In this document: one piece after another, positions 18,771 through 54,712 of the stretch
Layout of the letters: every line of letters begins with the position of its first letter
Position numbering within the stretch: the stretch's first letter is position 1
NCBI RefSeq assembly: GCF_006345805.1
Contig: NC_043015.1
Location: 48,422,001-48,486,000 of the forward strand
Source of the DNA: Octopus sinensis
Lineage: Eukaryota
Direction: 5' to 3'
DNA length: 64,000 nucleotides
Made by a program: the position numbers and the translations under genes
The notes under the pieces: model-generated
What the model was told of the DNA's origin: nothing
Databases searched by the model: none
The model's input: the letters and a program-made list of their open reading frames with translations, nothing else

Positions 18771-19216
18771 TTAGCTGTCGACTGAGAGCAAATGATTTAA
18801 AAGAATTTTGTTGTTAATGAAAGGTGGAAGCTTCAAGCTCTTCACTTTTTGGGAAATATTTCCACCTATACATGATCGAATTGTCCTGATACAATAAAAC
18901 TGAAGTGATTGTGTTGTGCGTGTATAGTCCGTATACCATTTTGCCATTTCTTCACATGCAAGTAATGGGTCTCTTAGGTCTTCATTTTTTTCAACTAAGC
19001 CTGCCTTCCATTGATAACCAGCAAAAAGTAAAAGTTTTGCTATCTCCCAGTTCTTCATGAAGATAGCCAGTTCAAAAGGATCGAAGTAATAATCAATTCT
19101 TTTGCGACAGATTCTACCTCGATTCTGAAACTCACAATTCCAATAAAGTAAATGTTTAACCACATTAATTTGATTACGGCTGACAGCAGCAAGAATTGGT
19201 GTAACGCCAGATGGAA
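18771..19216 (-). CDS. ASB-type gene, terminal exon D (ankyrin repeats plus C-terminal SOCS box)
   Basis: Acceptor gtttctttttctag|TT is phase 1 and matches the exon C donor (T+TT=Phe). Translation GVTPILAAV...TQSLQFYCIRTIRSCIGG...VKSLKLPPFI (BC box and Cul5-box-like motif). Stop TAA at 18773-18771. Confidence 0.92.
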
Positions 19217-20869
19217 CTAGAAAAAGAAACAAATTGAAATAAAAATTAATCAAACTGAGTAATCAGATCATATGCAAGAGTATTTGATTATAGAACTGTT
19301 AATAACAATCAACTCATCAACTGAAAGGTGTGGGTGTGGCTGTGTGGTGAGAGGTTTGCTTCTCAACCACATGGTCATAGGTTCAGTCCCACTGTGTGGC
19401 ACCTTAAGCAAGTGTCTTCTACCTTAACCTCAGGGTGACCAAAGCCTTGTGAGTGGATGACAGATGGAAACTGAAAAAAGCCCGTTGTATCTGTGTGTCT
19501 TTGTTTGTCCTTGACAACTGGTATTGGTGTGCTTAGCAGCTCAGCAAAAGAACTGAGCAGCTCAGCAAAAGAGACCAATAGAAAAAGTACCAGGTTTAAC
19601 AAGGCCCAACCTTCTGAGTGCTTTCACAGGACTTAGAAAAACTGAAGGACTGCTGCAATAAGTCTGTGAATCTGAGAGGGGAATATGTTGAATAAAATCA
19701 TAATTAACTGATCCTCCTGTACTTTCTTTGACCCAAGAGTCAATTTGTTTGACTAAAATTTTTCAAGGTGGTGCCCAAGCATGGCCAAAGTCGAATGAGT
19801 GAAACAAGGCAAATATAGAAGATATTATGCATGTATAACAACCCTCATTCATGTATAACGCAACCCCGTTAATTATGGGAAGGGAAATCCTGGATAACAA
19901 TATCTCTCGTATATATACCACATGCTGACTTTTCTTAAGAGTTACGATGTATGGGAAAAGAAGTTCGTAGTTAAATTCATTTGAATCATGGTAGAAAATA
20001 CATTGGAAATGTTCACATGTTCTAAATGAAATGGAATCAAACACACATAGACAAGGTATGTGTTGTTAGTTTGTGAGTTGACAGCAGTTTTAGGTGTAAG
20101 AGAATATATTCTTTAAGTGCCTGGTGTAAAAAAACACCTGAAGTTAAGTCATAGTCAAGTGAGACAACTCATATAGATGCCTAAGAGTGATTCATATAGA
20201 TCCCTAAGATGTGACTTATCAATGCTGCATACTGAACAAGGCCCACTGCGAGCTATATCGCCGAGTACGACTATATGCTAAATGGTTTAAACACCATCTA
20301 CTAGCATGTCCCAACGTTTGAGCCTTGTTTGGTATGCGGCACTGATAAGTCACAACAATGGCAAAACATTGGTGTCTGTTGGTCTAAGAAGGAAGGAACC
20401 TATGTGAGTTGTCTTGCTTGACTATCACTTACTTCCAGGTGTTTCTTAACACCAGGCGCATAGAGAATATATTTGTATTTGTGGGTGTACCTCTGTCTCC
20501 TTTGTATGTATATGTTCAAGTATGTCTGTATGTATGGGTTTCTGTGACTATGTATGTGCGTCTGTTATGTATGGATGTGTGTCTCCATATGTGTCCTTGT
20601 GTGTATGTGAGTGTGAAGTGTACATATGGTCATGTGTTTCAGTCTTCATTTGTGTATGTATGTGTGCTTGTCTGTCCGTATTACCTATCTAACTGTTTAC
20701 TTACATATTTATTTACCTACCTACGCACACACACACATATATACATATATATATACATATATATACATATACACACACATATATATATATATCTATATAT
20801 ACATATATATATACATATATATATGTCTACATAACAGCCAACTAACAACTCTACCAGAGTATATATAAA

Positions 20870-21330
20870 CTGTAGGTATAGGGGTATGACTACCTTCAAC
20901 ATATATTTCCTGTTTAATACTGGGGACGTATCATTAATGTCTGTGTGTTGGGTCCTTTGGGTGCTTAGATAAAATGCGGACGTCAAGTTGACCCAGTGTG
21001 CCTCCATGGTGGTCTTTGGCATGTTGGTAGAGTATGGAGGACTGTTTTTTATTGTCATATTGTCTCAAATGTTCCTTTAGTCTTTCCACAATGCTTCTAG
21101 ATGTCTCACCTATGTATATCATGTTCTTGTCTTTACAAGCACCTGCTATGCTACATTTCTAGTTCTGCAGTTAATGCCAGGGTTAATCTTACATACCATC
21201 CAGTTATCATTGGGACATGTGGTACCCTCAAAGGGGCATGTTCCACATAGTTATGATCTGATGGAGCTCCCTGGCTTTTGATAGGGAACCTTTGATCATG
21301 GACCTTGTAGCTGTAGCCAGCTATTTTTGA
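20870..21330 (-). pseudogene. Penelope-like element GIY-YIG endonuclease remnant
   Basis: CPNDNWMVCKINPGINCRTRNV... followed, after a frameshift, by MIYIGETSRSIVERLKEHLR...HAKDHH. Confidence 0.8.
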
Positions 21331-21390
21331 GTGGAAGGAAGTAGGTAATGATTTAAGTCTTGCATATAAGAAAACTGCAGTGTGTGTGTA

Positions 21391-21606
21391 TGAGGGGGCG
21401 CTGAAAAGTTTCAGGCTAAAGGGTATTGAAAAAGGCCAGGTTGGCGGCCCAACCTTCTGAGTTCTTTCACAGGACTTAGAAAAACTGAAGGACTGCTGCA
21501 ATAAATTTGTGAATCTGAGAGGGGAATATGTTGAATAAAATCATAATTAACTGATCTTCCTCTATTTTCTTTTACCCAAAGCCAGGAACTTTTCAGCACT
21601 CCCTCA
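21391..21606. mobile_element. Mariner-derived MITE (TA TSD)
   Basis: TA|TGAGGGGGCGCTGAAAAGTTTCAGGCT at the left and AGCCAGGAACTTTTCAGCACTCCCTCA|TA at the right. Related copies lie at about 19603-19740 (partial) and 43125-43625 (interrupted). Confidence 0.8.
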
Positions 21607-51830: not shown

Positions 51831-52392
51831 TTTGTAATAATGCCAAAGTGGAGTTACTGTAAATCCGAAGATGCACCATTAAATAGTGATGGAGCAGTGC
51901 CGTCCAGGGCACCTCGTTACAGACAAGCATGCAGCATGCAATTTAATCTCATTAATATTATGTTTATTATGATGCTTCATGAATTCTCTTATATTTACAG
52001 TGTTGGTTATAAATATAATTTTTGGTACAATCACAGGAAATTATATAACTTTAACGAGATATTTGTAGAATAAAACAGAGCACATTTCTGCTCTAGTCAT
52101 TATCGTTATAATTAGCGATAACATCATCATCAACGACAACAATAACTTCAAGAAGAATAACAACAAAAACAGCCTGCATCCGTTTTAGAAATAGATGTAC
52201 GACTTCATTGTTTTTATCTGGCGGTCTATTGCCTGGTCTTTGGTCTGTTTTCTAACACCCAACATTGTAAACAAACCCATCTGGCGGTCAGCTGTTGACC
52301 TGATTTCCAATGATGCGCTTACAAAAGGTTTCTTCTGTTGTCTTAGCTGGGATATGTAAATGAAAGTTTCCAGTATTTTGGCCTTTATCAGT

Positions 52393-52720
52393 CTGTCTAT
52401 CTATCTATCTATCTATCTATCTATCTATCTATCTATCTATCTATCTATCTATCTATCTATCTATCTATCTATCTATCTATCTTTCTATCTATCTATTTAT
52501 CTATCTATATATTTCTCTAGTTCTCTATCTATCTATCTGTCAATCTATCTATTTCTCTATCTATCTATCCATCTATTTCTCTATCTATCTATCTATTTCT
52601 CTATCTATCTATCAATTTCTCTATCTATCTATCTATCTATTTCTCTATCTATCTATCTATCTATCTATCTATCTATCTATCTATCTATCTATCTATCTAT
52701 CTACCTATCTATCTATCTAT
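52393..52720. repeat. (CTAT)n tetranucleotide array
   Basis: Directly visible. Confidence 0.95.
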
Positions 52721-54091
52721 TTGTCTGTATTAATGTTTGTTTTTATGTTGAGTTATAATAAAAACAATTTTACGTTAAACGAAAGGATTACTCAATACTT
52801 TTTGAAGAGACCATATCCATTATTCTTTACCAAGAATAGTGTTGACAGTGCTATGAAGCCCAATGAAGGCTAAGCAAGCCGAAGCTTCGAAGTCACTATC
52901 AACATTCTTGCTAAAGACTAATCTCTGTGTGTGTGTGTGTGTGTGTCTGATTGTCAGAGACGAGAAAAGTATTTAGGTTTTTATTTTGTAAAATGCTCAC
53001 AGTAGAAGCATCATTGTGGAATGTCTTTGCGCATTATAATATTAAATGATTTCAAATGAATAAATATGATAATGGACCTCTTTTTCTGAAATCACTTTCA
53101 TAAATAGAAATTTTAAAATTTTACTCTTGCACAAACACACACAGACATGTGAACTTTTTCCCATTTTTTCCCTAAAACCTTTGTGAAACTCGAGAAGGGA
53201 AGGTTTTCATAAAATGTACAGAAGACTCAACAGGTGATCAAATGGGTAGACATCTAGAATGACATCTGAGCGAGAATACATGAATAATATCCAGAGAGCC
53301 AGGGTCATTTTAGAAGAGGGATATACCATCAGTTCAATTTTGTGTTTGTGTGTGTGTACATACATAGATCGTACAAGCATGCATGTGTGTCTATGTATGT
53401 ATATATATATATAATTGTTGTATTTAGGAATGGTCATTTTGCCAGTTTAGCCAAAAATCTTGCAAAACAAATATATAAACGTGTATATATATATATAATA
53501 TATATATATATATATATATATATATATATATATAATGTGTGTGTGTGTGTGTATGTATGTATGTATGTATATATATGGGGAAGGAATCTGATATAAAGAG
53601 AAAGCTAGAAAATACTGAGAAGAGAAGAAAATTGTTTCAACTTTGTCCAATATGAAAGATAGTTTAGTTTATTTTCGTGCTTTTGAAATAAGTTTTGAGT
53701 GCGATGAAGAAATAATGTGTCTTTACCTATAAATTGTTTATAATAGCAACAGCGATATATAAAAAACAATGTTAGCTTTGATATTTTTTTATGAATAATT
53801 ATTTAAAATTATGTAAAGGATAAAAAAGATCCATTTGTAGTAAATTCGTCGTCTTCAGTTTGACTATAATGATACCAATAATAATAATAATAATAATAAT
53901 AATAATAGTAATAGTAATAGTAATAATAATAATAATAGTAATAATAATAATAATAATAATAATAATAATAATAATAATAAAAAGCAATTATTTTGGCATG
54001 AATGTCATTTAATTTTGACATGAATTTCACTTATCTCAGATCGCTTGAAGTGTGATTGGGTAAATGAAAGGTGGGTAAAATTGCAACTAAC

Positions 54092-54712
54092 CTGCAGGGG
54101 GGTACGTTTTCCACGTGGTTCGTACAGATTAATTTCAGCACCCATTGCAATCAACAAGTTGACAACACTTTTACGTATGTCGGTAGATTCGATGTCCCTG
54201 GAGATGATGACGCTCATCAGAGGTGTAAAACCGTATTGGTTGATCGCATTCACGCGTGCATTGTATTGAAACAATATATCCATAAAGTCCAGCATACCGT
54301 TGAGGGCAGCGAAATGCAGACAAGTGTCTCCATACTTATCGGAATCATTTATTAATTCTGGCCGATAATCCAACATGATTTTGGCCACTTCTGTCCGTCC
54401 AGCTAAAATACAAAACATTAGCGGAGTTTGACCCCAATTGTCCCGTGCGGACAAATTGGTGTTTCTGTCTAGCAAGATATTAACTAATTCTTTTTTACCT
54501 TTTTCACAGCAAACATGCAAAAGTGATTTGGTGCTAATGTTTGCTTCGTCAATGAAGAACGAATCCACATCGCAACCCCTGTCTAATAATTCTACAAATC
54601 GCTCGATATTCCCCTCATCGACAGCTTTATATAATTCCCACTCCATGTTTTCCAAAATTGGATCGTTGCTCCTTTGTTCGTCTTCCGAATCTGCAGCAAA
54701 TTCTTCTTCCAT
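54092..54712 (-). CDS. ASB-type ankyrin/SOCS-box gene, alternative first coding exon A (207 codons, about 5 ankyrin repeats plus the start of a 6th)
   Basis: Intact ORF MEEEFAADSED...WGQTPLMFCI...GDTCLHFAA...GFTPLM...RTPLQ. It ends at the phase-0 donor CAG|GTTAGT (GT at 54091), and the reading joins TPLQ|LAVLTKH of exon C. Confidence 0.85.

Follow-up and report, generated by a model that had tools for sequence, protein, structure and literature searches.

The subject of this analysis is a 64,000-nt stretch of the Octopus sinensis genome (NC_043015.1:48,422,001-48,486,000; referred to here as the window, with all coordinates given as positions within it) and a gene on its minus strand that is predicted to encode a ubiquitin-ligase receptor of the ankyrin-SOCS-box (ASB) type. 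The gene has two paralogous first coding exons, A and B, and one set of constant exons, C and D. The coding part of variable first exon A (54092..54712) opens with an ATG at 54712-54710 and runs for 207 codons to the residues TPLQ, encoding an N-terminal cap and ankyrin repeats 1-5, together with the 4 residues that open repeat 6. It ends at a phase-0 5' splice site, gttagt (54086..54091), for which a homologous GT was found in 4 of 4 species and which is used in transcripts from the cuttlefish genus Sepia. The coding part of variable first exon B, the paralog of A, lies at 47926..48474 (ATG at 48474-48472; 183 codons, ending TALH) and also has a phase-0 5' splice site, gtacgt (47920..47925), which reads gtacgt or gtatgt in the 4 species. 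The acceptor common to the variable exons is that of exon C, where a polypyrimidine tract and AG (ttccag) span 32885..32912 and the bases just before the exon start at 32884 are ttttttaatttccag. Constant exon C (32566..32884) completes repeat 6, beginning LAVLTKH, encodes repeats 7-8, and terminates at a phase-1 donor, GTAAGT. The coding part of constant exon D (18771..19216) starts at a ttctag acceptor, stops with a TAA at 18773-18771, and encodes the remaining ankyrin repeats together with linker helices and the putative SOCS box. The SOCS box coding region occupies 18804..18911, corresponding to residues ~416-451 of the A-C-D protein, and includes a BC box, SLQFYCIRTI, as well as the Cul5-box-like motif LKLPPFINNKIL.

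Exons A and B can be aligned collinearly from end to end (34% identity over 178 amino acids, E 5e-37), and both alignments terminate at one common column, immediately after TPLQ and TALH, respectively. In O. sinensis, a pyrimidine tract and two AGs stand immediately before the ATG of B. These two AGs, the nearest to that ATG, are in phase 1 and phase 2, and joining A to any AG up to 150 nt upstream of the ATG leads to a stop within at most 33 codons. The tblastn searches of the window with A, B, C, and D revealed neither a C- or D-like exon between A and B nor a further A/B-like exon. Conceptual joins give an A-C-D protein of 461 amino acids and a B-C-D protein of 437 amino acids. Both match public O. 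sinensis proteins letter for letter, namely isoforms X1 (XP_029648208.1) and X2 (XP_029648209.1) of a single gene. The original prediction, which was made from the sequence of the window, therefore holds up well in its description of the locus. The coordinates, alignment, and translation all agree with its claim of two collinear paralogous exons with ATGs of their own and the same phase-0 GT end; the phases and early stops bear out its statement that A cannot be joined in frame to the AGs just upstream of B; and its two products of 461 and 437 amino acids are the very ones present in the public record.

We consider it probable that the locus is a small variable-first-exon cluster in one ASB-type O. 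sinensis gene, with A-C-D and B-C-D as its products. The variable-exon/constant-exon arrangement that had originally been proposed draws support from the public isoforms, from conservation among coleoids, from purifying selection, from an A-to-C junction in cuttlefish transcripts, and from a SOCS box profile. In this arrangement, the first coding exon would have been duplicated in tandem long ago to give A and B, both of which bring an ATG and a phase-0 donor. Neither appears to have a conserved 3' splice site. The donor of a transcript that starts at A or at B would therefore be spliced to the next acceptor available, which belongs to exon C, and C in turn to D. The two products would have repeats 6-10 and the SOCS box in common and would be distinguished by the N-terminal half of their ankyrin solenoids. 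Exon B would then have a promoter of its own and be joined to C in vivo, and the alternative N-terminal modules would select different substrates or serve different cells.

The four-exon order, the start codons, and the donor positions recur in three other cephalopod assemblies, and the layout is therefore not due to chance. In Octopus bimaculoides (L024) the order A-B-C-D is found with intact open reading frames (ORFs), in a locus that includes 3383 N. The Argonauta hians locus (L016) is compact, spanning 12.6 kb, and free of N; it comprises exons A (10001-10621), B (16819-17367, intact), C (19426-19743), and D (22205-22645). The Sepia pharaonis locus (L023), also N-free, contains A (256-876), B (32313-32873), C (36643-36957), and D (43840-44277), and between A and B a third paralog, exon X (20798-21379), which runs for 194 codons from an ATG of its own to TALQ at the homologous codon and is followed by gtgggt. 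Exon X was also detected in a contig from another decapodiform (L028, 10001-10585; 194-195 codons) with 84% amino-acid identity and the same donor, and in both decapodiforms a run of A lies directly before its ATG. A search for a relic of exon X in octopods gave none at E<=10. Thus A, B, and X all start with an ATG, are open, and reach a phase-0 GT at a homologous position. The sequence read through past the donor differs in content and in length among species, as expected of an intron. The AGs found upstream of B in O. sinensis are absent from O. bimaculoides, Argonauta, and Sepia. The ATG of A and that of B mark where nucleotide homology between Octopus and Argonauta starts, and no conserved syntenic non-coding sequence that might represent a promoter or acceptor was seen in this comparison. 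The O. sinensis and O. bimaculoides sequences are 87-92% identical throughout and hence uninformative on the conservation of such elements.

Transcripts provide direct evidence for part of this arrangement. Six Logan contigs (L017-L022; 2.2-4.9 kb) encode the complete 464-amino-acid A-type protein of a Sepia species, a product that is listed in 38 blocks of the protein collection. Compared with the S. pharaonis genome, these contigs resolve into three blocks, consisting of the 5' untranslated region (UTR) plus A, then C, and then D plus the 3' UTR, with X and B skipped. In the cuttlefish genome, at least 255 nt of 5' UTR upstream of the ATG (345 nt in L020) run unbroken into exon A, which identifies A as the first exon. 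In cuttlefish, then, A is a true first exon that is spliced to C over X and B. Of the A-to-C junction that had been predicted for octopus, the cuttlefish transcripts provide a direct view, and in octopus itself the junction is known from gene models. The case that had been named as fatal to the idea, in which A always splices through B, is contradicted in cuttlefish by these same transcripts, as they pass over both X and B.

The variable exons also bear the marks of functional coding sequence. Between O. sinensis and Argonauta, the ratios of nonsynonymous to synonymous divergence (dN/dS; Nei-Gojobori, with dS saturated) were 0.074 for A, 0.076 for B, 0.028 for C, and 0.038 for D. Between O. 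sinensis and O. bimaculoides, A and B gave values of 0.23 and 0.37, and for exon X the ratio between the two decapodiforms was 0.105 at a dS of 0.95. Strong purifying selection on A, B, and X is evident from these ratios, and none of the three is a pseudo-exon. A maximum-likelihood tree of the variable region grouped the A sequences, that of Sepia included, in one clade (support 100/100) and the B sequences, again with that of Sepia, in another (100/99); its deep nodes, which would place A, B, and X with respect to the bivalve and gastropod sequences, lack support. The presence of Sepia in both clades indicates that the A/B duplication predates the split between octopods and decapods, which is usually dated to roughly 250-300 million years ago. 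Of the 180 positions that align without gaps, the eight A and B orthologs all agree at 33, and 14 positions are fixed within each of the two clades yet differ between them. The 33 invariant positions include an xDxWGQTP motif in repeat 3 that other molluscs have as well. On the evidence of these alignments, the A and B modules have clearly diverged, though they are not wholly different.

The copy number of the variable and constant exons was assessed by a six-frame search of the whole 2.7-Gb O. sinensis assembly, in which only the best candidates are scored. The exon A query returned A itself, then B (E 4.9e-27), and then generic ankyrin matches (E 5.5e-12 or worse), and the only strong matches to a C+D query were the window's own C and D. 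Neither a third variable exon nor a second C/D set was thus found among the candidates scored. Together with the tblastn searches of the window, this agrees with the expectation of a single C/D set that has no copy between A and B. The suggestion that more variable exons could lie beyond the window was not upheld for the O. sinensis genome, where none was found; the additional exon, X, is in the cuttlefish. The genome search also brought up two distant ASB-like paralogs, at C10:29293809-29294705 (a 428-amino-acid ORF) and C23:22236640-22237608 (a 382-amino-acid ORF). Unlike the A/B-C-D gene, both are intronless, each being a single uninterrupted ORF, and their C-terminal SOCS-box motifs read SLQVLCRKCI...LPVP and SLTDICALTI...LNLP, respectively.

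Comparison with other molluscs points to the origin of the arrangement. Lymnaea is the sole genomic outgroup in this comparison (the bivalve orthologs P0014 and P0007 are without locus records). Its ortholog (P0008; L025) is a compact single gene of 4.1 kb in which the N-terminal half is encoded by three exons, with no duplicate. The Lymnaea gene has a phase-0 intron after TALH, starting gtaagt, and a phase-1 intron before PSGVTP, and these are the positions and phases of the octopus introns between A/B and C and between C and D. Since Lymnaea shares both positions and phases, the cephalopod duplications arose upstream of an ancestral intron. In the freshwater mussel Potamilus streckersoni there are two complete tandem genes (P0142 and P0143, with neighboring locus tags) that are 79% identical over all 434 residues. 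The Lymnaea and Potamilus forms resemble the octopus gene in protein family and length, and the Lymnaea gene does so in both intron positions as well. Potamilus, however, duplicated the whole gene, whereas the cephalopods duplicated the first coding exon only.

At the protein level, Pfam Ank_2 and Ank domains were matched in both isoforms with E values of 1e-36 to 1e-44. The Pfam SOCS_box model (PF07525) matches 11 of 18 family members at E<=0.01. Searched against the PDB, a profile of the C-terminal region of the family (61 columns) was significant only to SOCS boxes, those of ASB9 (E 7e-6), ASB7 (9e-5), and ASB8 (6e-4). Foldseek matched the A-C-D model to nothing in the PDB beyond generic ankyrin and DARPin structures, and a full-length family sequence profile against the PDB was likewise generic, so that neither was informative about the SOCS box. 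The Cul5-box reads LKLP in octopus, LPLP in other molluscs, and, where the sequences align, LVLP in human ASB9. Identification of the C-terminal region as a SOCS box is thus supported at the level of the family profile and is borderline for the octopus sequence alone. By analogy with the known proteins it would recruit Elongin B/C-Cullin5. AlphaFold2 modeled A-C-D with a predicted local distance difference test score (pLDDT) of 88 and a predicted template modeling score (pTM) of 0.82, and B-C-D with a pLDDT of 91 and a pTM of 0.84. Both models consist of ~10 ankyrin helix pairs, followed by linker helices and then three short terminal helices. The boundary between variable and constant exons lies within the sixth ankyrin helix pair, in its helix 1, and in both models a helix spans this junction. 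Both isoforms are therefore modeled with confidence as continuous solenoids. It is plausible from their divergence that the A and B modules select different substrates.

Several observations weigh against the variable-first-exon interpretation. When Sepia B+C and X+C sequences were used as queries against a collection of 5.8 billion proteins, no transcript or read spanning a B-to-C or X-to-C junction was found; the matches obtained were exon-plus-intron read-through ORFs only (P0139, P0140, P0141). The octopus cluster members P0126 and P0130 are likewise read-through ORFs. A full-length octopus transcript of either isoform is also absent from the Logan assemblies. The pyrimidine tract and the two AGs before the ATG of B mean that B could be used internally in O. 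sinensis, downstream of a non-coding exon. The octopus sequence scores 18-21.5 bits against SOCS_box, below the 23.5-bit gathering cut-off. Finally, because the xDxWGQTP part of the putative binding face is common to A, B, and the outgroups, the A and B forms may overlap in their substrates. With respect to the read-through ORFs, the contigs that carry them have long unspliced flanks (~1.5 kb upstream of the ATG of B) and look genomic. Splicing of B to C is predicted on the basis of three public gene models, the conserved donor, and the end of B, which stops four residues into an ankyrin repeat that C alone completes.

Three other explanations of the locus can be weighed against these data. 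In one, A and B would be mutually exclusive internal exons downstream of one shared promoter and 5' UTR exon, so that the choice would be made by splicing and double inclusion would be removed through frameshift and nonsense-mediated decay. This fits with the pyrimidine-rich sequence and AGs that precede both ATGs in O. sinensis, and an A-to-B join that is always out of frame is what would be expected of a frame-incompatible pair. Nevertheless, we consider this scheme unlikely. The cuttlefish 5' UTR is contiguous with A, O. bimaculoides, Argonauta, and Sepia lack the AGs upstream of B, and no conserved upstream non-coding sequence is shared by Octopus and Argonauta. The absence of these AGs elsewhere, along with the start of homology at the ATGs, favors separate transcription starts for A and B.

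In another explanation, B (and X) would not be spliced to C but would be a nested single-exon gene, or would encode a truncated five-repeat protein lacking the SOCS box, and homology-driven artefacts would account for the B-C-D models. All B and X ORFs in the protein collection do run into the intron (P0129, P0130, P0139, P0140, P0141), and the first O. bimaculoides annotation split A, B, and C-D. On the other hand, the final repeat of B is completed by C only, the GT occurs at the exact codon in four species although the read-through tails are not conserved, and the intron position is ancestral and common to Lymnaea. Moreover, three independent annotations join B to C, and the read-through contigs, with 1.5 kb of unspliced upstream sequence, look genomic. 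A truncated or nested B is accordingly improbable in our judgment. As for an assembly collapse or gap hiding a second C/D set, which would make A and B parts of two ordinary tandem genes, the whole-gene tandem duplicates of Potamilus and the 3383 N in the O. bimaculoides locus give it some basis. This scenario, which the original prediction had listed as a threat to its own proposal, is countered by the four independent assemblies, each with one C/D set and including the N-free Argonauta and Sepia loci, by the single copy of C and D in the O. sinensis assembly, and by the cuttlefish transcripts, in which A is joined to a C that lies beyond X and B. We regard it as highly improbable.

A two-isoform model of the gene has already been annotated, as both predicted proteins are public. 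Matching isoform pairs exist in O. bimaculoides (XP_014769069.1 and XP_014769070.1) and in Octopus vulgaris (CAI9737019.1 and CAI9737020.1). For O. vulgaris, the annotation used PASA to add alternative forms on the basis of aligned Iso-Seq and RNA-seq data (PMC10700109), and the PASA-derived forms thus constitute indirect transcript support for the isoform pair. The Argonauta annotation has the A isoform only, although B is intact, and the first O. bimaculoides annotation has A, B, and C-D as separate fragments. The public names given to the gene models (ankyrin-1, ankyrin-2, ANKHD1, and PP6 regulatory subunit C-like) are misleading. Full-text searches found no paper linking cephalopods, ankyrin, and the SOCS box, and no description of an ASB gene in which alternative first exons swap ankyrin repeats. 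The gene models themselves are therefore not new; what is new is their description as a variable-exon ASB locus.

Public models also point to alternative ends for the gene. A further O. vulgaris model, CAI9737018.1 (443 amino acids), exits exon D after the residues EEMAK, using a donor at 18937/18936 in window coordinates, and joins a terminal exon ~18 kb downstream that puts CFFIRLNSLLYFGQLRNSMRQCCLLKGNLDLMISYSE in place of the SOCS box. An equivalent terminal exon is present in the O. sinensis window at 287-398 on the minus strand, with a ttctag acceptor and with the open frame and stop intact, and its use may give rise to an isoform without a SOCS box. Between A and B, at ~49951-50055 on the minus strand, lies a small exon-like segment whose acceptor, tatcag, is followed by GCATTGGCA and which encodes a peptide starting ALATFFEK. 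The earliest annotation of O. bimaculoides (A0A0L8HVC1) joins exon A to the ALATFFEK segment, giving a 218-amino-acid protein that lacks C and D, and the sequence of the segment is kept in O. sinensis.

Other features of the window are repeats and an open frame in the introns and flanks. A long simple repeat of trinucleotide type occupies 32973-33495, in the intron just upstream of exon C and within ~100 nt of the shared acceptor; it is open in several phases on both strands, with frames of up to 172 amino acids that contain runs of His, Asp, Ser, and Ile. An interspersed repeat is present in many copies on both strands of the introns and flanks (18091-18417, 23393-23848, 25845-26174, 28762-29136, 36096-36389, 41536-41921, and others), with frames that read RGHKHTSIGCQAMLGGQTQTHK and KVPRSGTEPGTMWLVNKLLTTQPLL; related copies are also scattered across the Argonauta locus. 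In the intron between B and C, an open frame of 243 amino acids is found on the opposite strand (30458-31189, plus strand). Its translation includes LRTVKRIRKELDESNGDYEG and, later, SIARDMGVSEFLIRQVVHEDIWY, and from a reading of this translation alone we take it to be, possibly, a transposase fragment.

If the isoforms are expressed as modeled, ligase specificity would be diversified at this locus without duplication of the part that docks the ligase, and other molluscs would have adopted a different solution, either a single gene or duplication of the whole gene. A more far-reaching proposal is that coleoids have kept a small protocadherin-like cluster since before the octopus-cuttlefish split and that, by promoter choice, it fits one Cullin5 substrate receptor with alternative ankyrin modules for recognition. 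We put this forward tentatively, as a possibility about which we are somewhat doubtful. Were promoter choice to operate in this way, cell-type- or stage-specific ubiquitination targets would be obtained from one locus, and this would be the first use of variable first exons in an E3 ligase receptor, and one that lies outside vertebrates. Since the locus has just two or three variable exons, it would lend itself to a clean comparison of promoter choice and substrate selection. In practical terms its value is modest; the misnamed gene models could be given new names as isoforms of ASB type.

Within the ASB family, the N-terminal ankyrin repeats and putative C-terminal SOCS box of the octopus protein are arranged as in human ASB9, ASB7, and ASB8, for which structures are available (3ZKJ, 3ZNG, 6V9H, 8Y1U, 9OGB; with Elongin B/C and Cullin5). 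The octopus protein is longer than these (~10 helix pairs), and its own SOCS box falls below the Pfam cut-off. The nearest precedent in the family is the alpha/beta pair of ASB2, in which, as predicted for the octopus gene, one ASB gene gives two N-terminally different proteins with one SOCS box; the two forms differ in tissue use (PMC8042406, PMC8594701). ASB2 beta is set apart from alpha only by 48 additional residues at its N terminus, which include a ubiquitin-interacting motif, and the ankyrin repeats are shared (PMC8042406). In contrast to ASB2, the octopus gene is predicted to swap five and a half of its ~10 ankyrin repeats for a paralogous set.

Beyond the ASB family, the class of genes with multiple variable first exons includes PCDH, UGT1, GCNT2, UGT2A, PLEC1, NOS1, and GR (PMC1885805, referring to Zhang, Haws & Wu 2004), and the UGT1, GCNT2, and UGT2A clusters were described as vertebrate-specific by Li & Wu 2007 (PMC1885805). 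The octopus gene would add an invertebrate example to this class, one that has to do with neither adhesion nor detoxification. Like Pcdh alpha and gamma, UGT1A, GCNT2, and UGT2A, it has tandem paralogous first exons with their own ATGs and donors and one constant set. As in clusters of the Pcdh and UGT1A type, the variable exon encodes the N-terminal part, which in octopus would likewise be the part that determines specificity. The number of variable exons differs by lineage, with 2 in octopods and at least 3 in cuttlefish, as in the birth-and-death evolution of the previously described clusters (PMC1885805). Unlike the Pcdh and UGT1A clusters, however, the octopus and cuttlefish loci have just 2-3 variable exons that are very old, ~34% identical, and not recently expanded. 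The octopus locus differs further in that its variable/constant boundary cuts a structural repeat of one continuous solenoid and in that its product is a predicted cytosolic ubiquitin-ligase receptor, in a cephalopod host. The layout thus matches the multiple-variable-first-exon cluster class, with a mechanism that is already known and isoform models that are already public, and the main additions made here are the third exon in cuttlefish and the deep age of the cluster.

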